Positions 32,989 to 61,317 of a stretch of DNA of 64,000 nt are shown one piece after another. Both the position numbers and the translations under genes were made by a program. The notes beneath the pieces were generated by a model. It ran no database searches, had not been told where the DNA came from, and saw nothing but the letters and a program-made list of their open reading frames with translations. The DNA lies in NCBI GenBank assembly GCA_021613535.1, contig CP075493.1, positions 434,001 through 498,000 on the forward strand. Reading direction: 5' to 3'. Position 1 is the first letter of the stretch; every line of letters starts with the position of its first letter. Source of the stretch: Adineta vaga. Taxonomy: Eukaryota; Animalia; Rotifera.

Positions 32989-35900
32989 TTACGAACAGTC
33001 TTCAGGTGATCGTGATGATACGTGGTAAGAGTAGCGCTTAGAACGAAGCCAGTCGATCGTGGGCTTTAATGATTTGAAGAGACATCCATTTTCGTCTATG
33101 GTAAGAGCTGAGGTCACGCTAGCGATATGCTCATCTAATGGATGTTCACCATCATCCCAGATATATGGGCGATCTTCAGTGATAGGTATATTAATTGTTG
33201 ATCTAATCGCTTCATAAACTGGTCGCGTTTTGTCAGACAGTAATAAACGAGCATCATAGCCACCATTTTCCTGTATTAAGTTGGCACGTAAGTCCAATGC
33301 TTGTACACAAACAAGAAAACATATACTTATATGTTGACTTAGTACGGATATTGATTTTCGCGCAAGACATGCAGCTACGTGTCCCATAGAATTAATATTT
33401 TGATTATATTGTTCGGCATGGGTTGCAAATTTATCAGCTATGGGTGCACCAAGAAAAAGTAAGTACGGCATGATAGAGTTCCCGGTTAGCTGGAGTGCTT
33501 TTACTCCTATGTTAACTTGTCGGGCGCGATTACCCACGAGGCAGCCAGGTAAACCGTTGCTAAATTCAGGAGTAACCATTTGAGCGACCTGTACATCCAA
33601 ATGTTTAGCCATCAAACCTACAGTTTGTCGAAGTCGATCCATAGATACAGCAACATGTTCACCGAGAAAATTGCCACCACCTATATGTGTAATAAAAATA
33701 GGTTAAAACCCGTTCCAGTTGATATATACTACCAGGAAATCTTCGATGAAACATTTGCAGTTAACTTCTTCTAAAATGTAACTATATTTGTGACCTTTGA
33801 CCCCTCTAACAAAGCTGTAGATAGCCATACATTTTTCCTTATAACTTTGGCAAGACTGCGATCAGTCATTCTAATCTTTGAGCTCGGTTGCGATGTTGGT
33901 GAGAGAAAGTAACCGACACAAGTTTGGCGACAATCTGTTTCTATTTTCTAGGGTGTCGTTGAGGGTGTACGTATTCTCTTCTCTGTTACCCAGATTCTTA
34001 CCCTCTACAAAACACAGCGCACTGAGATTTATACAAAGAAGCAAATGTCGACCAGAAGGTCATAGGGGTGGGGCATTTCCGTTTATTTAAGATAAACTTT
34101 AACGGATTGCGTTATCGTTAATAATAACAGTTAACGGATTGAGTAGAAACCGCCAACAGTTAAAACTAACGGTGATATAACCCGCTAATTAACGTCCGTT
34201 GGTTAACTCGCGTGAAATTAAATGGTCCGCACCTAATTAGAAAGAATTACTGACAAAATCTCGAAAATTAAAATCTCGAAAGCAAAAATCTCGAAAATAA
34301 AATCTCGAAAACGAAAATCTCGAAAAGCTATGATCTCGAAGGATAAAATCTCGAAACCGAGAATCTCGAAAATGCAAAATCTCGAAAATATAAAATCTCG
34401 AATAGAAATCTCGAAAAAAATCTAAATACATTGTCGAAAATTAAATTGAAAAAAGATGTAAAATTGAACTCATACAGCTATTTCGACAGTTTGTTAGGAT
34501 ATCCTATTATTTTCGCAACAATACATATGTGTTAAGTATGTTTGATTATTATTAAATCATTTTCTTTCATTCATCAAGTCTCACGCTCTTCGATATCATA
34601 TTAGCGATATCTAACATTCGTTATCTTCGTCTAGGGTTTCGATCTTTGTTTACAATAGATATCTTCTATATTTCTTTCATTTCATCGAGTCCTCAATTCT
34701 TTGTTCACTTGTGATATATTTAATTTTCTTTCGCTGTTCTTGTATTCGTACTGCACAGTTAGCACGAGTTATTCGTGCTCGTCCGTCTCGTTCGAACCCT
34801 ATATAAACACAATTCGTGTTTTCTCTTTTATTATCTTTCCATTTATTATCTTCTAATCATGTCGTCGACTAATTCAAACACATCGTCTACTATTACATTT
34901 ATTACAAGTAACAAGAAAAAACGTCTTCTTGTCATTGATGGTTTTATTTTTCAGCAGAACAAATCGAGTGAAAAGGTTACCTATTGGATATGCCAGGAAA
35001 AGCTGTGCAACATGGGTGTTCATCTTACTAACAACGATGTGTTTATTAAATTCACAAAATCTAATCATACACATATGCCTACACCAGAAAAATTGGAAAT
35101 TCGGAAAATGTTATTAAACGTGAAAAATCGTATTAAACGTGAAACGACTACAGTCGGTAAGATTTACACTGAAGAACTTTCTCGAACCAGTTTGACCACT
35201 ACTGCACTTGGTATGGCAAATACCACTAAACAAGCCTGTATGTAAAATATTCGTTCGTCATAAAAAGCAAACTATTTTGTTTTAGATCATGGTTTACATC
35301 AAATTCGTCGTCAGGATACACCTAGTCTTCCATCTTCGATGGATTTTGATATTCCATTACAATATAAAAAGACGACTGATGGCCAACGTTATCTACTTGC
35401 TGATAAAGTTCAACGTATTGATGGAGATGTCGACAAACGAATTATAGTTTATGCAACTGACGAACAGCTCCGTACTCTTTTTACATCATCACATATAATG
35501 ATGGATGGTACATTCGATAGCTGTCCACCACATTTTGATCAAATATATTCTATTCACTGTCTTAAAAATAACCAAAGTAAATTACTTCTTTCTATAAAAT
35601 AATTTTTATCTGATTTATTTAAACAGGTTATCTTTGTGCTATTGCTATTCTTTGTGGTCGATCTTATGTGATTTATAAAGAATTGTTTTCAATTCTCACT
35701 CATCATGCTCGTCGTCTTCAACTAATATTTCATCCTAAAATGATCACAACTGATTTTGAATCAGCAATGATTAAAACAATAGCTGATGACGTATGTTTTG
35801 TCTTATCTTCTCATTAGGTTATGTCTCTTTCGTCTTTAGTTTCCTAACGCACGACACGTCGGATGTTATTTCCATTTTACAAATTCAATTATCAAACGAA

Positions 35901-38900
35901 TTCAATGTCTTAATCTAACCACGGTGTATCGCGATGACAAGCATGCACGAGATACTGCACGTCAGCTGATGATGCTTCCTCTTATTCCGGTTAATCATAT
36001 ACGATATGTCTTTGATAAAATCGCCGAGACAGCACCTAATGTAATGAAACCGCTCATTGATTACTTCGAAGGTTATTGGATTAGAAAAATGCGTTGGAAT
36101 CTATGGAATGTCTCTGGACTGAAACATCGAACGAACAATTTTGTAGAGGGTAAGTTTTCAAATTCCTTTTGCTTAATTTTTCTTTTTTGATTAGGGTGGA
36201 ATCACCGGTTTAACCGGTTGGTTGCAAGATATCATCCTAATGTGTGGCATCTGTTTGAATGCTTTCGCATCGAGGAAGTTTGTGTTCGACAAACAATGTT
36301 GAAGCTGGCTATGGGAGATAAAAAACAAATCAACAGGAAAACGAACGATTTTGAACAACGACTTAATTCGCTTCAGTCTCAATTTGATGATAAAACAATA
36401 ACAATTGATGAACTTGCTGAAGGATTAAGTCTTTTAGTCGCAACGAAAATTTAAGCGTTCTTTTTATTCACGTTCTCAATTGAATTTTCTATTCGATCAA
36501 TAAATTCCGCGAATTTCTTCAATAAAATAAACTATTCTCTAATGCATTAGTTTCACTGCTTAAATTTATGTTTAGAACATTTTTAGTACCTTCGATATTT
36601 CTTCGAGTTATTTGATTTTCGAGGTTTTTCTCTTTCGAGATTGACAATTTTCGAGATAAAAATTTTTCGACCTTTTCCGTTTTCGACATTCTTTTTTTCG
36701 AAATTTGTTTTTCGAGATTTTGTCATTATACCATTAGAAAGAGTATTAAAAGGTATTAATATTGTCGTGAGAACAGAATAGTCATTATCGATTATAATTG
36801 AACTAATATGCCGTAATAACGAAATGGAATATATATAATACTTACAATAAACTTGGCCAGCATCAACATCAATCAACGGATTATCATTGGCGGAATTCAT
36901 TTCAATTTCAAGTGTACGCGCAATGTCATGCAGTGCTTCAAGCATTGGACCAAGAAATTGTGGACAACATCGCATTGAATACCGATCCTGAATTAATGCT
37001 TCCACACTTCGCTTTGTTAGTTTACCATCTAGAGCATCGTAAATCATTTTTGAGCCATCAACTAAGTCAAGTAAAGCAGTTGCTACGTCAATCTGTAACA
37101 ATAATAAAAGCATAATGGAATATTTCATTTCCTTTGTAATATGACACATGCAGTATGTAGAACTTCCCGACGGCAGATTTCGTTTGAAACGAACGAACTC
37201 TTTTTCGAACCTTCAATTTCAATGAGTGAAATTGCTCGGAACAGTCCAGTTTACATAGAAGATTTCTTTAATTAATTATATGAACTTAGCAAAAGACTAT
37301 CTGAACCGTTCAGTTTCCTACCAAGGAGTTTTCGGATGGTACGATTTTAATAGTTCTTTCATTCACGTCAAGGAGGTTTCTGAACATAAGCATGCAAACT
37401 CTTAGGCACATATTTAAAATGTACATTCTGTCTTTTGATATTTTCTGTCTACGTTAATATATTTTAAAATCTGGCCGAGGTGCTCTCCACGTTTTTGCAC
37501 AGAAAAAGAAGCATTCAGATAGAAAATTTCAGAAAACGAAATTGTGAGTTGAGGTCCCCCATCAAAAACCGAACCCGACCCAAGAAAGTTCAAATGAGTT
37601 GAAATTTGAAGCATATCTTAAGACTATAGTGAGCAGTCTGTGGTAAGAATTTCAACTCGATATACCTTTGTTTTCCAAATATACCAGACAAACAAGGCTA
37701 AAAACTAGATGATTTTCCTTCCAAGATTGCCCGCTTAACAGGCATGACACATTTTTCGTTAGAAAGAGCATCTCAGACTGCAAGCCACCAGAGAGCCCTT
37801 TATCTTTAAATCCTTACGTTTTTACTGAAAAAAAAGACATCAAAAGCTCTACGGCCTAAAAAAATGGGCGCCTTATTACATAAATGTTTGAATCTTTAAT
37901 AAAAAACAAAGGCTAATTAAAAAACGGACTCTGTGATGGCCTACATCTTGACATGCTTTACGAAATAAAAAAAAGTATACCATGCATCAGGGCCGAGAAA
38001 TCTTGGAAGCACAATTAAGAGATCACAAACGGAGAAAAAGATGAAAGAGATTTTTTATTTTCTGCAAAAAAATGTGATTTTTCGGGAAAAAAGAGGTTTT
38101 GCGAAAAAGAGTGTATCTTTTCTGAAAGATCCAAAGACAGGCTATCTTTTCATACATTTATCTCAATTTCCAAAACTTTCTCGAGGATTGATTTCTTTTA
38201 GGGGGCTAAGCCTGAAGTCAAGTTCTACTATTAAAAATGAATTATTAGCAAGACCTCTTTGTCGCAAATCCACTGTCGCGCGAAGATAAAGTTGAGAGTA
38301 TAGAAGTGAGTGTCCATGTTTAGCCTCATCTTCACCCACATTCACCATCTTATCAAAACATTTGAGAGCTTTTTCACATCTACGAGACACTGCATCAGAG
38401 CGGCAAACGATCCTGCTCAATGAGAGATCCCAGAATTTTGGTATCATCTTTTGATGGTCTTGCGTGAATAAGTCCTTGGGCAAAACGTTTAAGTGATTTC
38501 TATCGAGCTGATTAACAAAAAACCTACTCATATACGGATTCGCGTTATTTTTCCCTATAAATTTTGAAAACAGGTTTTCTGCAGATTAGCTTGAGCAAAT
38601 TTGCCGAGACTTTTTCGGCAGAAATCTTGCACTTAGGACTATATAAAAGGGCAAAATATATCCAAAATTCTGAGTGAGCCGCATTCTTTTACCCATCGCT
38701 GAATAAAGCTAGCGATAAACGGGCGATGAATTTGAATATATTCACAAAATTTACTGTCTGTCTTCTGAGCGCCCTCTTGATGAAAAATTCGTTAGCGAAA
38801 TGTACGCATTTCCACTAGGGAGCATGTGGCAGAGTTAAAAACTAGGTTTTATACCTAAAATAATGAGCTCTGTCAGATGATGTATGTCTCACCCGGAACT

Positions 38901-40867
38901 GAGAACTTAGTTGTGCAGCCCTCTATGGCGCTCTAGCGTGGTTCCTACAGAGCGTTTTTAAGGTATGCAGTAAACAAACAGTTACCTCTTAGATGTAATC
39001 AGGCCCTCAGAAACTAAGTGTAAGTCCATGCTGACAACTTCCAAAGAAGTGACTGCTGAAACATGGCTACAGGCTCTCAAAGGACACCGAAAACTCATTT
39101 GCCAGATATCCAAAAATAAAGCACAATTTATCTTGACTTGCTCAATACGAAGAGTAATTAAACGGTTGAAAAAAATAATATATTAAAAATGTGTTCTCTG
39201 TTCAGCTCAAGCTGAAACCAGTAACATTAAAAATATTTTACTTTAAAAATCCGTTTTAAAATATCAAATCTAATCGATATGTTACGTTCTTGCTCGCACA
39301 CATGAAGTTCTTATTAATTTTACTTTTCGGCGAAAATAGAGAGAGCAGAACGAAATAAGTAACGAAAATTTGGTGAAACGTAAAGAAATGGTATTATAAC
39401 ATAAGAACTAAAATATATGGCGCTTTACGACTAAATGCAAGAATAGATTCTTGATCTTGAGACTATCATACAAGAGGAAGGAGCCAAGGTAATAGTTTCA
39501 GCAAGTTAAATGAATTTCGATCCAAATATTAATAGGAATTTTAGAGTCATACCGCTCAGTAGTATGAAATTCCTATTAATATTACGGCCGAACGTTTGGG
39601 CGAAAAATCACTGGATCGAAATTTCGGCACTCTGTTACATTTGCTTATCACAAGATAACAACACTTACGGAAGTGTAAACGGTGAACTTTTACTTGCGCA
39701 GTCCTTTTCTGGATGTTTCACATTACATTTAACCATTAGACCTGAAAATGGTTTACCCAAACGCCATTTGTTTTCCTTACATTATACTACTCTATCCAAT
39801 CATTCTCCACGGTGTTCAGTCTATTTTTAGTTGCGATTCAAAGAGATGCGTTATTTTATAAGTGAAACAAGGTTTTATGTATATTTCTAACCAATTCTTA
39901 TATAGAATTCTTTCAACTGATACGTCAGACGAATGTCTATAGTTTTTCAATGGAAACTATTGCTGTATGGATATATATGTGACACCTTAAAGCTGAAATT
40001 ATTATATCACTTGCTATTATTCACCTGTCCTGGGTGGCCTTTGATCTTGTGCAAAAATGGATGAAATGGTTGATTACTAGAAGCTAATGCTTGGAGAACC
40101 ATCGCATGGATGTGAAGAATGGCAGCCATTAATGTATAAAGATCATAACATGCAAGTGAAGCAGAAGCCGTCATCATACTGGTTCCATTTAACATAGCCA
40201 AACCTTCTTTTGGGTCAAATCTTTTTATTTCGTATCCAAGTCTATGAAGTGCTTCAGGTGCACTAATTTTTTCACCGCGAAAATCGACATAAAGTTTTTC
40301 ATCTTGTCCAGAAACAGCAGAGGCAACATAAGATAGCGGAACAAGATCACCAGATGCTCCTATTGAACCGAATTTGGGAATTAAGGGTGTAATTCCTTCA
40401 CATACAAACCGTACCAATCGTTCATCCCACAGGCGACGAATACCAGACGCTCCAATCAGATGAGCATTTGCCCGTAAAACCATGGCTGCTCTAACAGTCT
40501 CTAACGGTAAAGTGGAGCCGCTACCCGTTTTGTGAGCACGAACTAAATTATTTTGTAGTTCCTCAGCAAATTCACCACAGACCAGTCGATTAGCAAGACC
40601 ACCGAATAAGCTTGTAACTCCGTACAGAGGTTGCGACGCAGCGACTATATCGTGGATGATGGTGACTGACTGTTCCATTCGACGACAAATATCCACATCA
40701 TTTGATAATTCAACGTCATGATGATGCCGAGCAATCATAACTAAATTTTCTATCGTAAGATTTTTACCATTAATTACGATAAGTTTCGATTTTTCTTTTT
40801 CGTCGTTTTTGTGCGCTACTGTTCCATTAGTGTATCCATTGTGAACAGAGGAATTGGTACAAGTCAT
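32989..40867 (-). CDS. MIO-dependent aromatic amino-acid ammonia-lyase, cyanobacterial PAL-like, 3 exons, about 593 aa
   Basis: Exons 40867-40025, 37092-36846 and 33680-32989, joined in frame by GT-AG introns (phase 0, phase 1). Motifs YGVTSLFGG, GSIGASGDLVPL (MIO triad ASG), KEGLAMLNGTS, QDRYSMRCCPQ, NSANDNPL, CGGNFLGEH, EFSNGLP, THAEQYNQNINSMG. Confidence 0.93.
34246..36732 (+). mobile_element. Mutator-like (MULE) DNA transposon in intron 2 of the ammonia-lyase
   Basis: Direct repeat attagaaaga at 34236-45 and 36733-42; TIRs tgacaaaatctcgaaa / tttcgagattttgtca with arrays of aaaatctcga subterminal repeats. Confidence 0.9.
34859..36454 (+). CDS. FLYWCH-domain MULE transposase, 5 exons, no disablement seen
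   Basis: Exons 34859-35237, 35286-35576, 35627-35790, 35840-36149 and 36195-36454 with 45-50 bp GT-AG introns. FLYWCH-like YWIC...C...HTH; catalytic motifs MMDGTF, TTDFE, CYFH and RTNNFVEGWN. Confidence 0.9.
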
Positions 40868-46119: not shown

Positions 46120-46497
46120 AAGGGTTTATGACACTCAGATCAGTTTATGAATATGAACCAGCTTTTGATAAATCTTGTTTTCGTTTAAAACTGTGCAAGG
46201 ATTTGTGTCCCGTTGCAAATTGATATACTTCTGTGCAAATTTCTTCGTTCACAAACTCTTTTTCCATAAATAAACGAGATCAGTTCTTAAATAGAAGGTT
46301 TACTATAAGGTATAATAAACACCTAAATAATGGTTGATCTCGTTTATTTATGGAAAAAGAGTTTGTGAACGAAGAAATTTGCACAGAAGTATATCAGTTT
46401 GCAACGGGACACAAATCCTTGCACAGTTTTAAACGAAAACAAAATTTATCAAAAGCTGGATCATATTCATGAACTGATCTGAGTGTCATAAAGCCTT
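46120..46497. mobile_element. Palindromic MITE (~165 bp arms)
   Basis: tttatgacactcagatcag...taaacgagatca mirrors tgatctcgttta...ctgatctgagtgtcataaa. Confidence 0.8.
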
Positions 46498-46842: not shown

Positions 46843-47322
46843 CTAGGAATAGTTTTCAGAAAACCAGATTGTATCGAAAAAATCATATATTGTTCTCTCA
46901 ACTAGTATAATCCATCATATGATGAGAGATGAAAGAGGAGGCAAGGTCCGTGATTCGCAAATAGATTATACAGACGAAGTAGAGTGACGAATAGGCGTTC
47001 AAGATGTAGTGACACTATCGATTGTCTATGTGATAGAAAAATCATAAGAATCGTATAAGTATTAAAATAATTTGATAACCAAAATATTTTTGCTAATGTC
47101 GAAAAAACTGAATAAATGTAATGCCTGAAATATTCATTCATTTGAAATGAACAGTACTTTGTTTTGAAAGTAAACATACGAAGTTCCAACATTATGTGCA
47201 ATACCAGTAGACATATATCTCATTCTTTAACGCACTATTATACTCAAACATTTTATTTTTTCTTAAATTTGATTAAGTACAATGGGCAACTTAATCTTAC
47301 ACAATAGTTGACATATTAAGAA

Positions 47323-48579
47323 CTAATATTTAGAGAGCAACATATTGTTAGGCCAAGTTCGAGGGCCATATGGAGCCTTTTCTAGCCATTCGGAGGCTAT
47401 TTTATCCGTAGGTGCTCTTGCTGCAGCTTCCACCTGTTTAGTTATCATTTCATTCTTTGGTTTCAAATGTGACAAAGCTTCACCTGCAGCATATCGATTA
47501 AACATGGCAGCAGCTCGTCTAACTTCAACGAATGTATCAATGGCATGACGAGCTGCTTCACGGTTCTTTTGAGAATAGAAGAGTGCAGTGTTGACAGCTA
47601 TAGCAGCCGACTCAGCATCAGCTACACCAGAATTAAGGCCACGAGCACCAAAGGGTGCAAATAAATGAGCTGCTTCACCAATTAGAAGAACACGTCGGGT
47701 CGTTTTGTGAGCAAAATCATCTGCTACAAGTTGTAAGAACTGGTAAGTTGATACCCATGTGATGTGATTAGCATATGCGGGAGGCACGACACGGCTGAGC
47801 CATTCCTTCACCCCTGTCTTGCTGCTTAATTCGACTGGGTTGTCAGTATTCTTACACTGGAGATCAATTCGCCAACCTCCTCGAAATGGAACCAGCAATA
47901 CATTACGTCCGTCTACTGCTGGATGGGCATAGTGGAAAATACGTTCACGTGGAAGTATTGGTATGCTATCCTTTTGTTGTTCGATGTCAGCGACATCGAC
48001 TACAATAAACCATCCGTCATCCCGACTACCTTCCATTTTTACGCCGATTTGTTTTCGAACAATAGAGTGAGCCCCATCAGCTCCTATGACATACTGTGCT
48101 GCCCAAATTGCTTCACTGTTGGCTACCTTTACTTTGACTAAACCAGTTTCATCTTCTTCACATGATTTTATGTCGATTACTGTTTGATCAAAAACAAGTT
48201 CAATATTGTTAGCAAGTGCACGTGCAAAAAGCATCCGTTCAATTTCAGTTTGAGGTAAACAAGTAAAGTGTGGTTTGACATCAGATGTAGTAGGTGTATA
48301 AGTCTTTGAGTACACTTCTTTTCCACCATAGAATGTACGTTGAGTTTGCCAGTAGATACCATGTTTTGAAATTTCGCTCCCTATGCCATTACAGACACGG
48401 TCCAGTATATCCAATGTCGTATTATGAAGAAATATGGCACGACTCCCTTGTCGAGGCCTATCAGCTGCCGATGATTCAAGTATTGTCACTTGACGACCAA
48501 GTGAGCGTAGAGTAAGAGCGGCAGCAAGACCAGTTGGACCAGCACCAACGACGATTACTTCTCGAGTATATGTAACCAT
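47323..48579 (-). CDS. FAD-dependent aromatic monooxygenase (class A; MhpA / 3-(3-hydroxyphenyl)propionate hydroxylase-like), intronless
   Basis: 418-aa ORF; VVGAGPTGL (Rossmann), VIGADGAHSIVR (DG motif), LIGEAAHLFAPFGARGLNSGVADA (GD motif, here GE). Confidence 0.93.
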   Translation of the reverse strand: MVTYTREVIVVGAGPTGLAAALTLRSLGRQVTILESSAADRPRQGSRAIFLHNTTLDILDRVCNGIGSEISKHGIYWQTQRTFYGGKEVYSKTYTPTTSDVKPHFTCLPQTEIERMLFARALANNIELVFDQTVIDIKSCEEDETGLVKVKVANSEAIWAAQYVIGADGAHSIVRKQIGVKMEGSRDDGWFIVVDVADIEQQKDSIPILPRERIFHYAHPAVDGRNVLLVPFRGGWRIDLQCKNTDNPVELSSKTGVKEWLSRVVPPAYANHITWVSTYQFLQLVADDFAHKTTRRVLLIGEAAHLFAPFGARGLNSGVADAESAAIAVNTALFYSQKNREAARHAIDTFVEVRRAAAMFNRYAAGEALSHLKPKNEMITKQVEAAARAPTDKIASEWLEKAPYGPRTWPNNMLLSKY

Positions 48580-48976
48580 TGTACAACGTGAGCCTATTCA
48601 AGCTAGAAATGAATAGAAAAAGTATAAAGCTAATTCAATAACTCTGCCTTATTGTCGTCAACAACAATAATTACTTTTTACTGTTGCGCAATTCTTGGTT
48701 TTTGATATACTCTAAAAAAATCGATGTTCTGCTGAACTTCAGAGGTTACGATGCTTTGTACAGAATGAGTTTTAGTTCAAGGAGACGAATACAGTTTGAT
48801 TGTCACTGCCCAGGATTTTTCTGGATTCTGTAAGCTACACAAGGTCTAGTGTTTCATCAACACAACTGTCTGTAACTTTCGTGAATTTTTTACCAAATGG
48901 TTAGCATTTTTGTAAGCTCTCTTTAGTGTGTTGGCGTTTGTGATGAATCACTTAGCATCAAACTTGAGATTAAATT

Positions 48977-49051
48977 GGTCTTTCTAGTTTAACTGGCTTA
49001 GGACATCTGTTCGAATAACAGACGGTGCGGATTCGAGCCCCACGTAGGTCA
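48977..49051 (+). pseudogene. tRNA-like sequence (tRNA pseudogene or SINE head)
   Basis: A-box-like TAGTTTAACTGG, perfect 5-bp stem TCTGT/ACAGA with a 7-nt loop, TTCGAGCCC T-loop, followed by a run of 7 T; acceptor and T stems pair poorly. Confidence 0.6.
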
Positions 49052-49607
49052 TCTTTTTTTCTATTCCTCTTTCTTTGATTCTCCTTCGCTAATATTCCTT
49101 TCGTTGCTTTAATATAGAAGATAACACAGCGTTGATATCTTTTATACCAAATCTTCGATAGGTTTGTAATTCATCCTAAGGTTCTATATATTTTCTATCA
49201 AATGCTTGACAGTTTTGCAATTTATTTAGAGGTTCGGAATCTTTCCTGTCGAACATTTTGATAACTTGATAATTGCGTCCCGTGGTTCGTGTAAGCGAGA
49301 AATAGGGTGAGCGAAAGTGCGGAGGTGTATCTGTATAAAGAAGGAACTTATATTTTCATCCACACCTTTACTGCTACGTTTTGTCTAACTTACGATAAAC
49401 TGTTCACTGGGGTTTTATTACTGTATCTTTGTCATAATATAAATATAAAGATTATCCATCCTTCGATGCGCATGACGAAACATCACTCTATTCATAAAAA
49501 GAATGAATGATCCGCATGTTGCTTATATTCTAACTTTTTCCTTATCGACTATTAGTGCAATTCAATATCTGTAGACATTCGATAATTACTACTTATAAAA
49601 GAAAAAC

Positions 49608-52600
49608 ATGACAACAGATTTTACAGAGATACCAGTCATCGATTTTGGTCATTTTTCAAATGGTACCAATGAAGAAAAACTTAAAGTCGCCAAAGAAATC
49701 GGAGAAGCCTGCCGTAACGTTGGTTTTTTTTATTTGAAAAACCATGATGTACCACAACAACTAACGAAAGATGCGTTTGCACAAGCAAAGCGATATTTTG
49801 CACTTCCACTTGATGTTAAAATGAAACATGCTATGGGACCTCCGCCCGATGGTGAATCGCGTGGCTTTTCACCATTTTTAACGGAGAAATTTGCAGCCAA
49901 AGGTGACTATAAAGAAACGTTTCATTTTGCGTTAGAATTGAGCAAGGATGATCCGGATGTTAAAAAGGGAGCCGTTCTTTATGGTCCAAACCAGTGGCCG
50001 GATTTACCAGGTAAGTACATGTAAGGTTGTCAAGTAAGAGATAAAAAAATTTAACTTTGTAGGATTTCGTGAAGTCATTTACGATGGTTACTATCTCGCT
50101 GTGAAAGAATTGGCTAATAAACTCTGTCGAGCATTTGCTTTGGCGCTGAATTTACCTGAAGATTACTTCGTATCATTGACAGATAAACCTATGGCTAACA
50201 TGTCTGTGATGTGGTATCCACCTCAATCACGAGATGAACCAATTGATCCACATCTTTTAGGCGAGTACCTTTTCCCATTTATTATCCTGTTTCAGACATA
50301 AGATACACTCACTGAAAAGAAATTTACTTAATATCGGACACTTTTTAATGCAACAGCCAGTGAAAAACCTAGAATGGTTCTTTTGAATATACCCGAACGA
50401 AGAAAGGAAAAATCTCAAATTATTACCAGTTTTCGTGAACTGGTTTTTATGTCATATTTCATACAGTGATACAAACTAATTACTTAGACTCCGTCAAGAT
50501 AGAAAACTGCGCTAGCACATCATATATGAAATACTTACTTTTATACGAAAGTTCAAATTTCTGTTATTATATACATATCTCAGCGGTACTTGTTCACCTA
50601 TATGTCGAGAAATCCAGTAGATATCAGATATTTGCTTTTACATATGTATGCTAAATCCTAATAGTCAATGAATGGACCAAGTATGTTCATCCACCTATCT
50701 CGGTAAACATAAAAGAAAGTATTGTAGATGATTTTCATACTTCTAATAATGTTTGAGATTCAGTTGACGTTTTCCCCAAAACGCCTTCTTATAGCTAAAG
50801 TGATGAACGCTGACTTATTGAAAAGAAATGAAAGCAGTGCAGATTTTATTTGAATTTGGATTTACGTCTCGAGGAGTCCGTACTATTTTTTTTATGCATT
50901 TTTTTAACAAAATTAGCATTAATAAGAATAATTCCATGTTAACTTAGTAAATCAGAGTGAAAAAGTTAACCGGTTTAGTTTTCACAAAATAATGTGTGGT
51001 TACATACTAAAAAGTGTTTGGAAAAACCAGAAGCGATCCATCAATGTAGTAGTGGATGATTAAATAACAAAATCTGTGATATAAACCATTTTTTGACGAA
51101 CACCATACAAACATGTTTGAAAAATCACTGAAAGAGATCTGAATCAAAATAGTCGAGTTGTCGATAATGGAAATATACTGAATTACGACTTACTGGTCGG
51201 TTTATGTCTAAACTACATTTTCATCCTAGATAAAGAAGGTTAAAATAGTAATTTCTGTCATCTGTGATCTTTCTTTTGCGCATTCGGTTAAGTTTTAGTA
51301 GGAAAAGGACATTTCGCACGGCTTGTTCATCACGATCTCCTGACCTGTAAAAACGGACCGGATGTTAATAATGACAAAAGTTAAAAATATACAGGATGTT
51401 CGTAGCGAAAGTTGTACAAAAGATTGTAAAGAACAGCGCTACTTTTTACTTCAAAAGATCTGAGATTTGACTAAAGCTCAGAATCAAAATAACCGACACA
51501 TCGTAATGAAAAAAGATAGGGTATTGGTAAGTGTGTTCATATTTACTCCTTTTGGGACATGTCAAATGCTTCACAATATAGCTTTTATTTCAAGATAATT
51601 ATAATAAACACGGACACCCGATCTGTTTCGTTCCGATCTCCTGACATAACGTCACACATACTAATGAACATCCAGTCCGATTTCTCTGCTTTTTCTCAGT
51701 TACGATCTTCTGGACAAAGTCCATTACGCACTTCCAGTAAACTTTTTAGGAGTAAAAAATCATTTTCGAATACCCGATCACATGTACGGCAGTTCGGGAC
51801 ACTTACGAGGGAACATATCCAACTGTCGGACGCCGTTCGACCTCATATTCTGGTAATGAGTAGGATTCAGTGAGACTAAGAAAACTCTAGAAGAGTTCGG
51901 GCCCATGGCCTATTGATCAAGCGTTATGACCATTCTATTGAATTTCCAACCTATCTGTAGATATGCATCGGAAAATCAAGTTACGGTATTTTGGTCTAAA
52001 ATGCTGCTCAATAATAAGTCTAATAGCCATTAGAATATCCTGAAAGTTTTAGTGAAAACGAATGTTCCTTTCTGGAGATATTGGATTTTCAAAATCTGGT
52101 CAGTTAACACAGACGTACCACAAAAAACGAGTTCACTTGAATACTTCATATCTCAACAAAAGGAACATTCGTTTTAGCTAAAACTTTCAGGATATTCTAA
52201 TGGCTATTAGACCTATCATTGAATAGTATTTCAGACCCAAATTCCGCAACTTGATTTTCCGATGAATATCTACAGATAGGTTGGAAATTCAATGGAATGA
52301 TCATAACGCTTGATCAGTAGGCCATGGGCCCGAACTCTTCTAGAGTTTTCTTAGTCTCACTGAATCATACTCATTACCAGAATATGAGGTCGAACGGCGT
52401 CCGACAGTTGGATATGTTCCCTCGTTAGTGCGAAATGTCTCTCTCCATTTCAGTAAAGCATCATTTTTGTTGCTCAAATATTTAGCTAGTAAGGCACATC
52501 GTTTAGATTCGCTCATTCTTTTCCAAAAAGAATTCTAAGCGTCAAGGATATTTAGATACTTCGAACAAAACGAAATCCGACGTAAACCTCGATAGATCTT

Positions 52601-54322
52601 CTGCTCAAAGCAGTAATACTACAGGCGGCTCCAGTAGTTTTATTTTAAAACTCTCAATGTAGATCAATTTTTTACACATAATATAAAGGTTCATTAAAGT
52701 GGAGGAAAATTAGTGTGCAAATGCTGCTTGCAAAATATTTTCTCATTGTTTTAGCAAACTGAATTAGAAATAATAGTAGACACAAGTTATTTTGGACAGT
52801 ACTGATACGAACAGAAGATTTGTTGAAAACTTTCTTAATTTCGGCAAACCTTCTTAATCACTGCGAAGTCTTTATTCGCCTTTTTGCCCATAGCGAATCG
52901 AAATAACTTTTAAAGCATCGAGATCTTACCATAATTTTGTCTGAATCAGAAGTTTTTTGAAGCTCTCTGCACCTAAATCATTCAGGTAAAAGTAACTAAT
53001 CTCTTTAACTCCTTTCGATTTAGTTCGTTCAAAACAATAGGTAGAAGAAATATTACCAAATTTTTTGCAAACAAACAGACTCAACTTACGGTGGCGGAAA
53101 ATATTGTGTAGAATCGATGAAAAATGAGAAAAGAGTCATGTGAAGAGACATAGTTTGATCTTATAATATGTTTTTCGATAAAATGAGTATCAAAGAGTGC
53201 TGGGACATTAAGTCTCAAAATTGCAAATGAACAATGATAGAAATAAAGTTAATTTGGCACTATCACAGTAGATTGGTCATAGTTAAGTGACATGCCAAAC
53301 GATCGTCAACAGGTTAGAATTTCAATTGACGGTTTATTCAGTAATGTTTAAGACAAAGTCTGAAAGTCAGTGACTGAAATAGAAATAGATCTCTAATAGT
53401 GACAACACTTTACCAAGCAACGTATATGTTATGGAGTTCACAGCAGATCCTATCGATTTTTTTACGGTTGCCTTGTAATTCTCTTATCAATCCAAATAAG
53501 TATGTTAAATTATTCGAGATCCCAACGCACAAATAATCTTTTTATAACATAGAATATTTTGTCAATCGTTGTATACTTCATCAATACTCGTTAACATCTA
53601 ATTCTGTCCTGATAACTAACACTTATAACGAGATAAAAAAAGTACATTGTGCACAGTATGTGGGTGTATACACTTTTATTAGTGAAGTTTTAACTTAGTT
53701 TAGATATTAGTCCATGACATATCTCAGTGATATTATCGCTGGGATCTACCGATCCACCTATCCAGACAAATAGATAGATAAACCCCATTGGTAATATCAC
53801 TGGAATCTGTCATGTACTGGAACCACGTAATAACGAAACTGAAATAGCATTCGTTCAGTTGACATTTTTCATCATTTCTCTATATCGCTTCTATTTTTCG
53901 TGAACACAGGATGTGGTGCACACACAGACTATGGCGGTTTCACACTTCTGCAGCAAACAGAAAATATAACAGCATTGCAAGTAAAGAATATTGAAGGAAA
54001 ATGGATTGACGCAAAACCGATCGAAGGAGCGTTCGTTGTGAACATTGCTGATACAATGCAGCGATGGACAAACGATCAATTCGTTTCTACAATTCATCGT
54101 GTTATAAATTTAGGTCACAATGAGCGATATTCTATTGGTTTGTTTTTTGGACCAAATTATTTTACAAACATTGATTGTTTGCCAACGTGCTTTGACAACG
54201 TAAAAAATCCGAAAAAATACAAACCAATTTTGGCGGGTGATTTTATCATGAGCCGCATCGTTGATGGTCATACACCTAAATTTGACGAGTTCGACCTGGA
54301 AAACGTACCAGCCGAACAGTAA
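49608..54322 (+). CDS. 2-oxoglutarate/Fe(II) dioxygenase, IPNS/DIOX_N family, 3 exons, about 337 aa
   Basis: Exons 49608-50010, 50063-50260 and 53910-54322. IPVIDF, ACRNVGFFYLKNH, GPNQWP, WYPP, GAHTDYG (HxD), STIHRV (H) and RYS (2OG-binding RxS) are all intact. Confidence 0.92.
51806..52424. mobile_element. Foldback MITE (CGAGGG family, TTA duplication) in intron 2 of the dioxygenase
   Basis: tta|cgagggaacatatccaactgtcgg ... ccgacagttggatatgttccctcg|tta. Confidence 0.9.
53709..53820. repeat. Small hairpin MITE just upstream of the exon 3 acceptor
   Basis: agtccatgacatatctcagtgatatta mirrors taatatcactggaatctgtcatgtact. Confidence 0.5.
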
Positions 54323-56444
54323 AATGGTGTTAATGAAAAAAGACATGAATAACAGTATTATTATCGAATCGAACATTCATCGTCAGACATATCGTACTGC
54401 GTAAATACCATCTTTAGAGAAACATTACTTAATAAAGTCGTGCTTTTTTTCAATTTCATTAGTTAAATAAAACTTCCTCTGGTTTATACAATTCATTCGG
54501 GAAGTATATAATTTTCACATTTATATACTTGAGTATTCTTTTTTTACACGTGATTCACCCAGACTTTTCACACAATGCAGTAATCTTTAATAGAATTAAA
54601 ACGACTTTTGCTCTGATATTTGTATATGTCCTTTGATGAGCAGAAACTCATAAACCCATTAATTAATTTAATTCTTGTTTTAACTCACATTGACGAGATC
54701 AGTTGAAAACACTTTTCATCTATTATGTTTATGCAAAGAAGCTCAAAAAATTATTTCTTGGTTGCGATAGTACACTTACAATGCCATAAAGTTATACAAA
54801 CAATCGGTGAATAAAACGGCGACTTTTACTTTGAGATCGTCACATCTGATGTGTGTAGTACAACGCAACATCTTAATTTTGCTTCCTAGTTACGATATAC
54901 AGTTCTACTGTGTACATCTCCATAGGTAGCATCTAATTCGTCATTGATGCTATATGTGTACTGCATCTGCAGAAACATGTATTTTTAATTCTTTATTTGC
55001 CACTTCATATTAGCTGCTCCATCGAGGATCGAGGATTTCAATCGTTCTTGCATATATTATAGAAGCAAACACTTATCGGACTTATATCTGAGGTGCTTGG
55101 AAAATATTGTTTCATTTTTTAGATATCTACATTTATTTAAGGACAACGTCATCAGAAAACGGTATTTTATAACACATATTTCATCACGGCCGCATTTCTT
55201 TAACCCCGAAGTTTTATGGTGAGTACATATCAGATTTTATTAATATCTATAAATAAAAATGAGTTGATCAATAATTCTATGGGCACAATGTCGTTGTCAC
55301 TTATCGTTAGAGACAAAATAGTTGTAAAAAGTTACTTTCATTCAGTCATAATCGAAGAATAGTGTAATCACTTTTGTAACTGGTAGCATCGTGACACACT
55401 GATGTTGGAGTTCCTGGCTTCGAAGCTCGACCGCAATAGTAGACAAAAAATTTAGTTTTTACTGCATGTTGGTTACATATGCCCACACAAACGCGCATGT
55501 ACATAGGTAATAGTTTCGCACTTGACTAAACGCGTAAGCGCACACAGTAGACAGAATAAATCTATCTGATTTGTATATCATTGTCGCTTTCTCATCGAAC
55601 CTGCTAGACATCAATTTGAGACGATCTTCGTCACTGTTTGTCTTGCACTAACGCTGAGACACAATGCTGTTAATATTCTTTGGCTTCCTTATTCTTGTCT
55701 TTTTAACTTATCAAAGTTATAAACACTTTTTTCCATCTCCGAATGTTGATCCACGCGGCAAATATGTGCTTATTCCGATTGCCTATACCATCAGTAAAGT
55801 GAACTTTTCTCCACGAAGAAAATAGATGAAAACAAAAGCGATGCGTACCTTTATAGAGGCTAGTATGAGGATTAAAACAAAAAAAAAATTTCGCTCCAGC
55901 ACCTCCCTACGAAAACTAGATAGGTTTACAAGATCCACCTATAAGTAGTGTAGTGGAACACATGAGAAATGCCACCATTTGAAAAATTTTTGGGGTAATA
56001 ATGATTTCAGAGATTTTTTAGAATCAGTTTTTAATGCTGAATCTAAAAAAAATATTTTCAAGAATTTTCAAGAACCGAAAAATAGTGATTTTTGCATATT
56101 TCGTCCAAAAACGTGATTTTGGGGAGAACTCAGGTTTTTCAAGGATTTTGCGATTTTTGACTACAAAATAGCTTCTAAAAAGGATAAAAAGTAGTGCATC
56201 GTGATCAGCAGCTCACGCTCTATCAAACCATGTGGAAAAAAAGCAAAAATAAATTTCACTCGATTTTTGCATTGCGTGCACCTTAATAAACAGATAGCCT
56301 TCAAAACATCGATTGAAATATTTTTTGTTCATATTTGCCTGTACATTGAATAAATTAAATCTTTTCTATTATATTTTAAAATCAATAATTGATTTTTAGT
56401 TAATATTTTTGTAAACATTAATAATAATCAAAAATTCAAAGCTA

Positions 56445-57288: not shown

Positions 57289-58196
57289 TCGATACATCTT
57301 TGACAAGGGGTCGAAACTTATGCAACACCCATTAATCAATGTTTACAAATCTGTCGCTATAAATATACATAATAAAAAAAATCATTAAGTCTTGTTTGTG
57401 AAATTGTTGCACGTAGATACGATTTCAACAGTTTTAAAACAGAAAATCTTCGTTCAGTATGTGCCTGATTGATATTGGTGAAGTTGTTAAAACTTTTAGA
57501 AAACTTCTATGTTTGGATAAAAGCAGATAGCGCCGAGGTCGAACAAATTAGAGAGGACATCGATGTATTTTTCGAACTTTCTAGAAAGCTTTAAAAATAT
57601 TCCATGAATTTTTATGAATTGGTGAGAGAAAAAAAAACCTTTGCAAGCTGGAGAGAGCGGGAGCGTCGTATCCCAACGTCTCTCAATCTGGATACCCCTA
57701 GATAAGACTGACCTATTTCGAAATATTTTCTGATTAAATAAAGGATTTTCAGTATTTACCGAAGTGTCTATTCTCGAAGGAGTGGCGGTCGCCGGTTCGC
57801 CAAGCAGCTAGATCCGCCACTGTCCGGATGCAAGAGACTTGATGGTTTTACAGCTTGAAGAGTTCGACTGACTTCAGTTTATGTCCCTGCGAACCTTGAA
57901 GACTTCGGTACTCAGACTAATTCCAGACATCTGTCTTTGAAAGACACGATGCTTTTGAAACTTTGTTAAACTTCTTGTAATATCAGAATCACGCACTGTA
58001 AAGTAGCTTGCTTTTTTGTGTTCTATTGAAGGTTAAGACGAAAAATTCTTTCTGGTTTTCAAAGATTCGGAAATTCGATTTCAGAAACTCGTGAAGGATG
58101 TCATATGGTGACAAAACTGGAAATTGTGTAGAAATCTAACGAGATAAAATTTCTCTGAAAGTGCATTATAATGGTATATTGCCGATGTAATATGAT

Positions 58197-58308
58197 CAAG
58201 GGGGAAAACGAGACTTCACCATTTAAATACTTCATCGGACTTCACCGATACTTCACCATACTTCAAACACTGCATGAAGTAAATGAAGTCTCGCTTTTCC
58301 CCCCTTGA
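58197..58308. mobile_element. Short MITE with acttca internal repeats
   Basis: tcaagggggaaaacgagacttca ... tgaagtctcgcttttccccccttga. Confidence 0.6.
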
Positions 58309-59124
58309 ATATGGTGCAGTTGCGACACGTATTAAAACTTCCATACCTCCATATTAGATGCCCAAGGAGCTTCTAATTTGGCAAGTGTAAAAATTTCCCG
58401 GAGGGAACTTCCAATATGTTCTATGATCTTTTTTAAACTTCAAGTACCAAAAGTTTTCGAGGAATTATCGACGATTTTGTTAGATTTTTCTACTTTTTTA
58501 CTACAAAATCTTGTTATTTCTCAAAATTCGCTGTAAAAAGTGATAAAAATCCGCAAAAATCCCTCAAAAAGTTTTTTAAATATAGGGGTCTTCTGATATG
58601 GCTGACAAATCGAAACCTCAACAGATGCTTCAAATAGGGGAGGGCTTCTAATATGGGGAGTGGTTTAGTCAATATGGCAAGTATGCATAAAATCATTGAA
58701 GTATGACTGCACAACTAGCGAGTGACAGTGCGTGCTTGTATCTATGTTATCACAAGGCGCATCGAATGTGATGGAAAGCTAGCTATCGCAGGAAGGTGAT
58801 CCAGAATAGTATACTTTCATATTTTATTTCGTGATGATTATCATGTAGTTCAGACGAAATGCGCGATTTTTTTATCGCTTAATTTTGACATTTATAGTCT
58901 CGATAACACTTACTTTTCTTAGGAAAAGATGTAGTGTGAAATTCTCTAGAAAATACTTAAGTAATAGAGAAGATAAATGTCTGGCCTTTTAGAATCATAA
59001 CTATGGGACGATGAAAGCAAGACTAGTAAAATATTGCCTGTTTAAAGTAATGAATGATCATTCGAGGAACTAATGTTTTTAGGCTTTCACTGATAGTTTT
59101 ATAGATTTTAATCATTCAGTCTTA

Positions 59125-59692
59125 CGAGAAAAGCTTCCTAGCTGTTCAATCGCTTTTGAGTTAATATTTTGGCCATAGGTGGGATCTGATTTCGAGTCTT
59201 AGCGATCGTTGATTTAACTGATAGATCATTTTTAATATAAAATGTCCAGATAACAGATTTGATCTGAGACTTCGTCCATAGATAGGTCTATTCATCATGA
59301 GAATATTCTAAAAGTTTTAGCCAAAAAAAATGTTCCTTTCTTGAGATATTGAGTTTTCCAGTAAACTGGAATTTTGCGTCTAGTCGGCGATAAGCAATTA
59401 TTTTTTAATAATCCAGTATCTCAAGAAAGGAACATTTTTTTGGCTAAAACTTTTAGAATATTCTCATGATGAATAGACCTATCTATGGACGAAGTCTCAG
59501 ATCAAAACTGCGTTATCTGACATTTTCCCCAATATTGAAAAAATGATCAAAAATCTAGTAAAACCGTCGTAAATCAGCCCCAAAGACCTAGCGATCCAAA
59601 TCCTCTTAGGTGATTATCCTAGCCTCGTCATCCCCCACGTATGGCCAAAATATCAGCTCGAAAACGATTGGACAATTGAGAACCTTCCCTCG
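59125..59692. mobile_element. Foldback MITE (CGAGGG family, TTA duplication)
   Basis: tta|cgagaaaag...ttttggccata ... tatggccaaaa...ttccctcg|tta; near-perfect inner arms 59258-59350 / 59418-59505. Confidence 0.75.
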
Positions 59693-60368
59693 TTAATCAT
59701 TTTTCGAAAAGTTTCGGTGAAAAGTTCTGGACGAAACAATATGTTTCTCTCAATGTTTATGGTTTTTTGCGTTATAGTTATATCGTATTACTGAACATCA
59801 CTACCATCTAGAATGTCGAAAAGATTCATCTTCGCTCCTTGTTGTCTGCAAATATTATCACCATTACATTACTGTGGATTTTTCAGAGTATGATATACCA
59901 TATCGCACAAAGTAATTTGATTAAGACAGTAATGATCATCACATTACAATCATAACGAGTACTAGAAAGCGTACCTAGAGAAAGTTATACTGATGTATTC
60001 ATAATAACGTTTGAGAGAAAGGATGAAAAGATATGGAGATTTAGGAGATTTTAGATGACAGTACTACTCCATTATAGGATATAACTAAAATGCACGAAAC
60101 CATAATCATTGGGAGAACCATGGTTTTTTGCAGAATTCTTTGCGAATGTTTTGGAAGAAAGACCAAGGATAACTGACTAAAAAACCACAAAGATCTCAAA
60201 ATAATACTAGAATAATTATTTTTTCGGCACATCATTTATGGCTTAGAAAGGACCATACTTTGCTAATCTTTCTTTCCTTTTATCTTACATTTTTCTTTTA
60301 TATCATTTTGTAGTTTCACCACAAATCTTTTCCTTAGAGGTTCAAAATATGTTACCGAGAGTATATAT

Positions 60369-60536
60369 TAGTGGCGTCGCCAGAAAAAATTGTTAGGGGG
60401 GGCTCAGCCTATTTTTTGCCCCCTCTAGGGGGAGCAAACATATAAATTTGCAGTAGTTTCGAAACTTGGTAGGGGGGGCTCGAACGTTCGTAGGGGGGGC
60501 TGAGCCCCCCCTAGCCCCCCTCTGGATACGCCACTA
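60369..60536. mobile_element. Small hAT-type MITE with G/C runs
   Basis: gtatatat|tagtggcgtcgccag ... ctggatacgccacta|gtacatat (7/8 TSD). Confidence 0.75.
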
Positions 60537-60897
60537 GTACATATGTCAAGATTGCACAACAAAAATTTATCAATTTGTTTTGCACCACTCGATATAACTC
60601 TTTCATATTTATAGATTCATTTAAATTTTTTACAAAAGCTCTATATTACTCTATTAAAGGACTTAGATTGAAGTAGTTTCTGAGCTTGAACAATACAGAC
60701 AGTAAAAAAGTCTTCTGCATCCGAAAGTCATGGGGATGATCTTTCTCACCTACAGTCAGTGTTTATCTGAGATTGAAACATAGTTGGAGATGGACTAAAG
60801 TGTTAAATGTTCTAGAGTCGATATGATGTGTTGAACAAATTTTAGATAGTAATTTGGTAATATTATGAATACATTTATCTTACTTTTTTAGTTAATT

Positions 60898-61317
60898 ATG
60901 TCAGCTATTAATGATACAGAAGCAATAGCCGGATATGGTGTGAAAGGCGATCGTATCAACGCTTCATTTGAATCTGTTTGGGAAGCAATGCTTGATAGTA
61001 TTCATCATCCAGAAAAATACATTCCCGTCAAAAATGTGAAGATTATAGATAATGGTGACCATATTTATCGAGAAATGTTACATGAAGATGGATTTCTCCA
61101 TAAAGAAAAAATTTTTTGCGACAAGGAGAAAGGTGAGTTTACGTTCATTGATCCTGGCGATTTTGTGCATAAAAATAAATATTACAAAGATGAACAAGTG
61201 TTAGAATATTGGCTGGAAAACTATCAAGGTGAAAGAATACCGTGGAAAGAACCCAGAGTATTGATATTGTCAGCAATTAAAAAAACACAAGAATTAGCTG
61301 AAGAACAAGAGAAATAA
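60898..61317 (+). CDS. AtaL/DUF1857-like SRPBCC protein, paralog 4
   Basis: 139-aa ORF; GYGVKGDRINASFESVWEAMLDSIHHPEKYIP...EKIFCDKEKGE...QVLEYWLE...KTQELAE. Confidence 0.8.
   Translation: MSAINDTEAIAGYGVKGDRINASFESVWEAMLDSIHHPEKYIPVKNVKIIDNGDHIYREMLHEDGFLHKEKIFCDKEKGEFTFIDPGDFVHKNKYYKDEQVLEYWLENYQGERIPWKEPRVLILSAIKKTQELAEEQEK

Follow-up and report, generated by a model that had tools for sequence, protein, structure and literature searches.

Do foreign genes that lie side by side in the subtelomere of a bdelloid rotifer work together on one compound, or have they only come to be neighbours? The question is raised by a locus of Adineta vaga that encodes in a row an ammonia-lyase, a flavin adenine dinucleotide (FAD) monooxygenase, a 2-oxoglutarate (2OG)/Fe(II) dioxygenase and an AtaL-like protein. 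In this study, we analysed the 64,000 nucleotides of A. vaga chromosome 1 from 434001 to 498000 (the window), which lie 434-498 kb from the chromosome end. The genome analysed comprises 100.8 Mb in six contigs, and the chromosome of the window has 18,146,847 bp. The stretch is part of the left subtelomere of chromosome 1 and is rich in foreign genes; its intact genes of foreign type are the lyase, the monooxygenase, the dioxygenase and four AtaL-like open reading frames (ORFs). An earlier note, made from the sequence alone, had taken the host for an animal, probably a bdelloid, and the four gene types for consecutive and intact. Both statements agreed with our results, the first by the position on A. 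vaga chromosome 1 and the second by Pfam matches, gene models and catalytic motifs. A fungal or protist contig was ruled out, as the stretch sits in the subtelomere of chromosome 1. Our preferred reading, held tentatively, is that the locus is the rearranged remnant of an Adineta module that made or modified aromatic (aryl) acids. A four-step pathway shared by the window genes is possible.

The ammonia-lyase and the FAD monooxygenase

The two genes that carry this reading have the following features (positions within the window; E, expectation value).

40025..40867, minus strand: ammonia-lyase exon 1 (ATG at 40867; PF00221, E 6e-73; GT donor at 40024)
36846..37092, minus strand: ammonia-lyase exon 2 (PF00221, E 5e-21; AG acceptor at 37094-37093, GT donor at 36845)
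32989..33680, minus strand: ammonia-lyase exon 3, to the stop (PF00221, E 4e-19; AG acceptor at 33682-33681)
34775..36454, plus strand (opposite to the lyase): transposon remnant in lyase intron 2 (a FLYWCH-domain ORF, then further short ORFs)
47323..48579, minus strand: FAD-dependent aromatic-ring monooxygenase, 418 amino acids (aa), intronless (PF01494, E 8.5e-47)

All splice sites of the lyase are GT-AG, and its three exons amount to 1,782 nt, or 593 aa. The lyase was searched exon by exon, as were the dioxygenase, ligase and thiolase described below. The exons cover positions 1-242, 240-317 and 331-465 of the 466 positions of the PF00221 profile, and a full-length cyanobacterial phenylalanine ammonia-lyase (PAL) aligns to them across residues 23-542. 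Exon 1 carries the Ala-Ser-Gly triad of 4-methylideneimidazole-5-one (MIO) enzymes, which is invariant in alignment A2 (A171, S172, G173) and aligns with the MIO position of the PALs of Nostoc punctiforme (2nyf) and Anabaena variabilis (2nyn), the closest entries of the Protein Data Bank (PDB). These two belong to the same MIO-lyase fold family, share the triad and match exon 1 at E 6e-69 with about 50% identity (46-51% for cyanobacterial PAL-like proteins); they have 565-567 aa against 593 aa in the rotifer lyase. The rotifer lyase differs from them in being encoded by an animal, in its two spliceosomal introns, in standing on a long branch of its own and in its substrate-switch positions, which also lie in exon 1. 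The selectivity pair is Ala-His in the window and in Adineta steineri, whereas 2nyf and 2nyn have Phe-Leu. This His is nearly invariant within the rotifer group, and the nearest cyanobacterial homologs carry Tyr-His or Phe-His. Watts et al. in 2006 reportedly described His-Leu at the selectivity switch of tyrosine ammonia-lyase (TAL). Since the switch residues are Ala-His instead of the Phe-Leu of the solved cyanobacterial PALs, the assignment to PAL or TAL in the earlier note was not adopted, and we file the window enzyme as a MIO ammonia-lyase for a putative aromatic substrate.

The lyase shares 77-82% identity per exon with its A. steineri ortholog (80% in exon 2; 82% in exon 3, where the ratio of nonsynonymous to synonymous divergence, dN/dS, is 0.09). 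Its intron positions and three-exon structure recur in Didymodactylos carnosus, which makes the gene an old one among bdelloids. In the tree, the rotifer sequences were not nested in cyanobacteria, SAR324 or Chloroflexi but separated from all three by a long branch, and all of the nearest relatives were bacterial. The donor of the lyase appears to have been a bacterium with an enzyme like the cyanobacterial PALs, and the transfer an early event in the history of bdelloids. All lyase copies of A. vaga lie on chromosome 1, among them a paralog at 241-246 kb (paralog dS 0.5-0.6). An A. vaga homolog is already in UniProt as 'histidine ammonia-lyase-like' (B3G4D2_ADIVA), and the deposited A. vaga lyase model (I4U23_000075, P0121, 366 aa) consists of exons 1-2 only. 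The annotation lacks exon 3, which lies past the transposon-bearing intron. This intron 2 has 3,165 nt, and since its counterpart in A. steineri has only about 200 nt, the FLYWCH insertion is specific to A. vaga. Its ORF at 34775-35245 matched PF04500 (FLYWCH, E 7e-10), in line with the transposase-type element noted earlier inside the lyase intron, and the other ORFs of the remnant had no Pfam match. The ammonia-lyase of a spaceflight study (PMC12220480) was considered and rejected: it is a native metazoan-type histidine ammonia-lyase and hence a different gene.

The PF01494 (FAD_binding_3) match of the monooxygenase spans residues 7-358, and the glycines of its dinucleotide-binding motif (G12, G14, G17) are invariant in alignment A3. 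The protein is 57-60% identical to proteins of about 405 aa from Cellulomonas, Microbacterium, Actinotalea and Promicromonospora. We built a tree of 42 sequences, five of them rotifer or rotifer-like; these five formed one clade (Shimodaira-Hasegawa-like approximate likelihood ratio test, SH-aLRT, 100), which was nested in a clade of Micrococcales (support 100). The monooxygenase appears to have come from a Micrococcales-like actinobacterium; to date, it is recorded from Adineta and from close environmental relatives. The foreign origin proposed earlier for this gene and for the lyase was upheld by the nesting in Micrococcales, by the wholly bacterial relatives of the lyase and by the location of both genes on the host chromosome. 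The class named in the earlier note, MhpA, was not: the NCBIfam MhpA models scored the protein at 69-114 bits, far under their equivalog cut-offs of 390-966, and it has 418 aa against about 554 aa and lacks the C-terminal domain. The best PDB matches of the monooxygenase reached only E 1e-19, with no closer characterised member found there and no TropB-type enzyme among them. An exact-sequence look-up of the protein returned no record.

We compared the neighbourhoods of 66 bacterial and archaeal homologs of the monooxygenase (44-60% identity). An FAA-family hydrolase occurred in 31 of the 66 loci, and a gentisate 1,2-dioxygenase (a bicupin protein, matching 3bu7 at 2e-81) was present in 21. 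The closest actinomycetes have an ADP-forming coenzyme A (CoA) ligase gene that abuts or overlaps the monooxygenase gene. From these bacterial neighbourhoods, the protein is a putative hydroxylase that would feed the gentisate route by acting on benzoate-type acids or on the CoA esters of such acids. A route from benzoyl-CoA through 3-hydroxybenzoyl-CoA to gentisate has been proposed for Bacillus stearothermophilus. The rotifer protein has the same size (about 400 aa) and the same FAD motifs as this gentisate-linked bacterial family (with members in Micrococcales, Bacillaceae and haloarchaea), and its identity to the Micrococcales members holds over the full length. In contrast to the bacterial loci, ring-cleavage and hydrolase partners were not found in the rotifers, where the neighbours are the lyase, a multi-exon ligase of eukaryotic style or the dioxygenase.

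Linkage was compared across species in Adineta and environmental rotifer-like contigs. On one A. steineri contig, a thiolase, the monooxygenase, a ligase and the lyase lie within 15 kb. The monooxygenase ortholog (71% identical) lies between the thiolase and a 682-aa AMP-binding ligase, and the lyase ortholog follows 5 kb beyond the ligase, less than 10 kb from the monooxygenase. A third rotifer-like lineage, whose monooxygenase is 68% identical, has the orthologous ligase head-to-head with this gene, and the adjacency of these two genes is conserved in two lineages. A lyase copy in a different A. steineri assembly (CAJNOM010000561.1, 1-17692), with 89-91% nucleotide identity to the lyase of the monooxygenase-bearing contig, lies between genes of polyketide synthase (PKS) or non-ribosomal peptide synthetase (NRPS) type; upstream of this copy are domains for KR, condensation and AMP binding, and on its downstream side a 976-aa A-T-C module follows immediately. 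In A. vaga, the ligase ortholog is found at 221.5 kb of chromosome 1, near an NRPS-like gene (213-217 kb) and the lyase paralog at 241-246 kb. A multi-exon thiolase homolog lies at 422.9-425.1 kb of the same chromosome, and a better-conserved copy at C4:5.907 Mb. Alignments of the chromosome 1 thiolase homolog contain stops, which may be intron read-through.

In the A. steineri and environmental rotifer loci examined, neither a dioxygenase nor an AtaL-like gene was found in the vicinity of the lyase or of the monooxygenase, and the pairing of monooxygenase and dioxygenase was seen only in A. vaga. The cluster linkage claimed earlier was thus retained for the lyase and the monooxygenase, which are linked in A. 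steineri, and not for the other two families. The partners with cross-species support (acyl-CoA ligase, thiolase and NRPS modules) are themselves absent from the window. Co-transfer of a bacterial operon was rejected, as neither the ligase nor the thiolase of A. steineri resembles its counterpart (CoA ligase or thiolase) beside the Microbacterium monooxygenase. Since the donors differ, no cluster was transferred.

An intact phenolic acid decarboxylase (PAD) gene lies at 432721-433191 of chromosome 1, 0.8 kb before the window (PF05870, E 5e-50), with further copies at 276.8 kb and 1243.5 kb and a broken copy at 1251.6 kb. The bacterial substrates of PAD are hydroxycinnamic acids, to which the product of a TAL-type lyase also belongs.

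The dioxygenase, its duplicated block and the AtaL-like genes

The dioxygenase gene diverges from the monooxygenase gene, and the pair lies in a duplicated block.

48580..49607, no strand: spacer of 1,028 bp between the divergent monooxygenase and dioxygenase genes
49608..50010, plus strand: dioxygenase exon 1 (DIOX_N, PF14226, E 5e-35; GT donor at 50011)
50063..50260, plus strand: dioxygenase exon 2 (aligns to residues 138-205 of A. steineri paralog P0245; AG acceptor at 50061-50062)
53910..54322, plus strand: dioxygenase exon 3, catalytic (2OG-FeII_Oxy, PF03171, E 7e-20)
46856..54853, no strand: segmental-duplication block with the monooxygenase-dioxygenase pair (inverted copy at chromosome 1, 332038-321372)

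The dioxygenase has 337 aa in three exons, with introns of 52 nt (GT-AG) and 3,649 nt (GC-AG). The long intron (50261-53909) is 79% conserved in part in the duplicated copy, and the intron at its position in an A. steineri dioxygenase paralog measures about 2.8 kb. The lyase and the dioxygenase, with three exons each, are the two genes that had been said to have gained introns. In an alignment with thymine dioxygenase (5c3p), the iron triad His-x-Asp...His and the 2OG motif Arg-x-Ser of exon 3 are intact. Together with the PF14226 and PF03171 matches, these residues confirmed the earlier assignment to the IPNS-like 2OG-Fe(II) dioxygenases. The nearest PDB entries of exon 1 were an EFE-like enzyme (9ovh), TropC (6xjj) and SpoC. 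By sequence, the protein appears to be of a generic IPNS/DOXC type, about equally near to thymine dioxygenase, EFE-like enzymes, TropC, SpoC and feruloyl-CoA ortho-hydroxylase. In the fungal TropB/TropC system, an FAD monooxygenase gene likewise adjoins the gene of an IPNS-like 2OG dioxygenase, and TropC matches the N-terminal part of the window dioxygenase at E 2e-15 and the catalytic part at 8e-12; unlike TropB, the window monooxygenase belongs to the bacterial gentisate-pathway family. Since an exon-wise, word-based search misses full-length relatives, an exhaustive search was run with exon 1. The nearest non-rotifer relatives that it found, at about 45% identity, were unnamed metagenomic proteins and an alphaproteobacterial 'IPNS-like' protein.

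The duplicated block measures 8-10 kb and is 79-89% identical between the copies by blastn, part of the long intron included. Both copies of the pair are intact (90% and 94-97% aa identity; dN/dS 0.07-0.27). The pair was duplicated as a unit within A. vaga. The 1,028-bp spacer may be a shared promoter region. Close copies of the monooxygenase all lie on chromosome 1, for example at 481 and 330 kb (paralog dS 0.18).

The AtaL-like genes of the window are as follows.

60898..61317, plus strand: AtaL-like SRPBCC protein, 139 aa, intronless (no Pfam AtaL match; AlphaFold predicted local distance difference test score, pLDDT, 90.7)
22095..22526, minus strand: AtaL-like paralog, 143 aa (alignment A1; 96% identical copy at 301 kb of chromosome 1, dN/dS 0.18)
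15214..15645, plus strand: AtaL-like paralog, 143 aa (Pfam AtaL E 0.0018, 18.5 bits; alignment A1)
5227..5649, minus strand: AtaL-like paralog, 140 aa (Pfam AtaL E 0.003, 17.8 bits; alignment A1)

The last three are the upstream paralogs announced earlier, each of which was found as an ORF. With a gathering threshold of 27 bits for Pfam AtaL/DUF1857 (PF08982), two paralogs fell under the cut-off and two, including the gene at 60898-61317, had no match. The model of the protein at 60898-61317 showed a helix-grip fold with the strand and helix order expected of the SRPBCC superfamily. Foldseek placed polyketide aromatase/cyclases, PYL receptors and PA1206 (2ffs, rank five) at the top; 79 PDB entries matched at E 0.001 or below, and the best 50 of the 79 were all of SRPBCC fold. 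The language-model nearest neighbours of this protein were AtaL clusters (0.94). The label 'AtaL-like' is borne out by the fold and the language-model features and not by Pfam. PA1206, of the AtaL/DUF1857 family, shares the helix-grip fold and the size, whereas polyketide cyclases and PYL receptors are equal to it by fold. A profile of the paralogs against the PDB gave only marginal PYL3 matches (E 0.06). The word-based search for homologs outside A. vaga gave one paralog only and was uninformative, as it needs shared 5-mers.

A paralog map of 0-520 kb was built from search hits and eight 10-kb pieces. The dioxygenase family has at least seven close copies, with copies at 285, 316, 328, 363, 374 and 484 kb of chromosome 1. 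The AtaL-like family has at least ten members in the genome, with copies at 175, 301, 313, 439, 449, 456, 495 and 507 kb; the copy at 174.6 kb is 95% identical to the gene at 60898-61317 (dN/dS 0.10). This amounts to about 8 AtaL-like genes per 0.5 Mb, with a dS of 0.10-0.22 between paralog pairs. As both families are present in many copies across 0.5 Mb, one dioxygenase and one AtaL-like gene are expected beside any gene.

The earlier note had also described intact genes next to decayed ones. Intactness and purifying selection were confirmed, and the decay is shown loosely by two fragments: an isolated part of an OTU-like cysteine protease at 24518-24850, plus strand (PF02338, E 5e-8), and a transposase helix-turn-helix domain at 3043-3315, minus strand. 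No recognisable gene remnant was found in the gaps at 41-47 kb and 54.4-60.9 kb, and ten ORFs (at 41-47 kb, 51.5 kb and 56-60 kb) had no Pfam match. Just past the last AtaL-like gene lies an inverted repeat (61824-62461 and 62852-63489) whose arms of 638 nt are 99% complementary and 390 nt apart; its form suggests a foldback element or else an inverted duplication of very recent date. The 511 nt at 55775-56285 recur with 99% identity in two copies that lie next to each other in opposite orientation at chromosome 1, 314627-315646, and are probably a recently active repeat.

Transcription, selection and the readings of the locus

Transcription was shown for three genes, namely the lyase, the monooxygenase and the dioxygenase. 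All three were present in the contigs of run X1, which carry no expression levels. Contigs of this run covered the 5' end of the monooxygenase, dioxygenase exon 1 (49610-49907) and the end of exon 3, and none lay on the 1,028-bp spacer or the long dioxygenase intron; since only coding parts were covered, the run behaves like RNA. A contig of run X5 covers 50069-50258 and then jumps to 53909, which shows splicing of the 3,649-nt intron at the RNA level. Of the words sampled from lyase exon 1, 96-97% were present in runs X1-X4 and 39% in a leaf-litter metatranscriptome. Run X17 had no contig on the monooxygenase/dioxygenase stretch. In all four gene families, dN/dS was 0.07-0.27, whether the comparison was with A. 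vaga paralogs or with A. steineri (0.14-0.27 for the monooxygenase). These results indicate that all four families are under purifying selection.

Our tentative reading, an aryl-acid module of which a rearranged remnant is left in A. vaga, would run as follows. The lyase and the monooxygenase would have been acquired separately, from different donors, and would be the remainder of an older Adineta module that, as in A. steineri, also had an acyl-CoA/AMP ligase and an SCPx-type thiolase. We infer the substrates, the order of the steps and any product. First, the MIO lyase would deaminate an aromatic amino acid to an arylacrylic acid; the ligase would then activate this acid, and the flavoprotein would hydroxylate the ring. 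In the A. vaga window, the module would have been rearranged: the ligase would be gone, with its ortholog 250 kb away, and the lyase would have been inverted and hit by a transposon. The monooxygenase would have gained a new head-to-head partner in a dioxygenase whose family had expanded locally, and the pair would then have been block-duplicated. The dioxygenase and the AtaL-like genes would be neighbours through local family expansion. The module may serve NRPS chemistry. We lean towards the formation of a product over full catabolism because of the NRPS neighbours and because a gentisate 1,2-dioxygenase was not detected in the A. vaga genome, which is weak evidence as one Bacillaceae query was used. 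From the aromatic pathway of the earlier note, this reading keeps a recurring lyase-monooxygenase linkage that is transcribed and constrained; the linkage of the dioxygenase and the AtaL-like gene, the MhpA class and transfer as a cluster were given up.

Several observations weigh against this reading. The Ala-His selectivity pair leaves the substrate of the lyase unfixed, and the substrate of the monooxygenase is deduced only from bacterial neighbourhoods at 44-60% identity. In the 6.3-kb gap between lyase and monooxygenase, tblastn (E up to 10) and blastn searches for a ligase remnant gave only noise. No monooxygenase was found nearby on the lyase contigs of Didymodactylos and of environmental origin, and each lineage seen has its own order and orientation of the genes. 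As A. vaga and A. steineri are congeners, the lyase-monooxygenase linkage could be inherited synteny without selection for clustering. RNA-labelled runs X17-X19 held no words of lyase exon 1; the contrast to X1-X4 reflects either condition-dependent expression or differing material. Joint presence in one transcriptome is not co-regulation.

The best surviving rival is coincidence, by which unrelated foreign genes with separate substrates were shuffled into a dynamic subtelomere and the A. steineri linkage is leftover synteny. We regard it as unlikely and still take it as a serious rival, since the comparison is within one genus and environmental contigs. In the AV20 assembly, which has six chromosomes with telomeric repeats at all scaffold ends, the foreign-gene candidates (n=2,679) make up 8.3% of the genes and are enriched in rearrangement-prone subtelomeres and for oxidoreductases (PMC8494291). 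A location about 0.45 Mb from the chromosome end places the window in the type of region where foreign genes accumulate, so four foreign genes side by side are not beyond chance. Coincidence would also agree with the different donors, with the scatter of the dioxygenase and AtaL-like copies over 0.5 Mb, with the unconserved order and orientation and with the differing dS of the paralog pairs, by which the duplications were separate. It accounts less well for the monooxygenase-ligase adjacency, which was kept in two lineages at dS >1 despite inversion, and for an adenylating enzyme beside the lyase at three separate loci. The chemistry of a lyase, a ligase and an aryl-acid hydroxylase is coherent, and the lyase copies, the close monooxygenase copies and the PAD matches all lie on chromosome 1, mostly in its first 0.5 Mb.

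The aryl-acid reading can be carried further, to a phenylpropanoid-like pathway of Adineta assembled in an animal genome from at least three donors. It would consist of the lyase, the ligase, possible side-chain shortening by an SCPx-type thiolase, the actinobacterial gentisate-family hydroxylase, a neighbouring NRPS A-T-C module that would take over the product, and export by an ABCB pump, and in A. vaga it would have been split, with the hydroxylase re-paired with a 2OG dioxygenase. In this full extent, we consider it quite unlikely.

It is decidedly improbable that the locus is a detoxification or catabolic island for dietary phenolic acids from litter and microbes instead of a biosynthetic one; in such an island, PAD would remove hydroxycinnamates, the monooxygenase would hydroxylate benzoates, the dioxygenase would oxidise further and the lyase would salvage nitrogen from aromatic amino acids. 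This explanation is kept alive by the intact PAD gene just before the window. The catabolic gentisate or aryl-CoA clusters of the bacterial monooxygenase relatives and the lyase words in the leaf-litter metatranscriptome also speak for it, as does the listing of many foreign bdelloid transcripts in aromatic-compound degradation pathways (PMC3499245). On the other hand, the ring-cleavage partner gentisate 1,2-dioxygenase was not found with the Bacillaceae query, an ammonia-lyase makes cinnamate-type acids instead of removing them, and lyase copies adjoin NRPS/PKS genes, which are biosynthetic.

The series of lyase, monooxygenase, dioxygenase and AtaL-like protein that the earlier note had proposed, leading to a coumarin-, tropolone- or catechol-like compound, is very improbable: four consecutive intact genes, a divergent pair 1 kb apart that was kept together through duplication with both copies constrained, and TropC and feruloyl-CoA ortho-hydroxylase among the PDB neighbours of the dioxygenase would fit it, but block duplication retains neighbours whatever their function, an AtaL-like gene within 7 kb is unremarkable at the density found, the linkage of the dioxygenase and the AtaL-like gene was not seen outside A. 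vaga, and the monooxygenase is neither related to the TropB type nor MhpA-class.

Foreign genes and small-molecule chemistry in bdelloids

Bdelloids are the animals richest in foreign genes. To our knowledge, animals are generally thought to lack a PAL-type entry into aryl-acid metabolism. Single foreign genes of such a sort and subtelomeric NRPS/PKS clusters of bdelloids are already known (PMC3499245, PMC11258130), and our search of the literature found no paper on a lyase-hydroxylase module. In response to a fungal pathogen, bdelloids were recently shown to activate NRPS/PKS clusters that they had acquired (PMC11258130). Those clusters (Nowell et al. 2024, PMC11258130) are, like the window genes, subtelomeric, foreign, domesticated by introns and locally duplicated; in contrast to them, the window has no NRPS or PKS gene, and its module consists of small tailoring-type enzymes from different donors. 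For pathogen induction, a term search for the lyase, the monooxygenase and the dioxygenase in the supplement text of that study gave no match.

If the module is not functional, the locus would show that subtelomeric segmental duplication and rearrangement can yield cluster-like sets of foreign tailoring enzymes, which would call for caution in cluster calling in foreign-gene-rich genomes. If it is functional, an animal would have put together a small-molecule pathway of several steps out of bacterial genes that were acquired separately, and not by the uptake of an operon. This would also suggest that rotifers make hydroxylated aryl acids or aryl-capped peptides as a class of metabolites.

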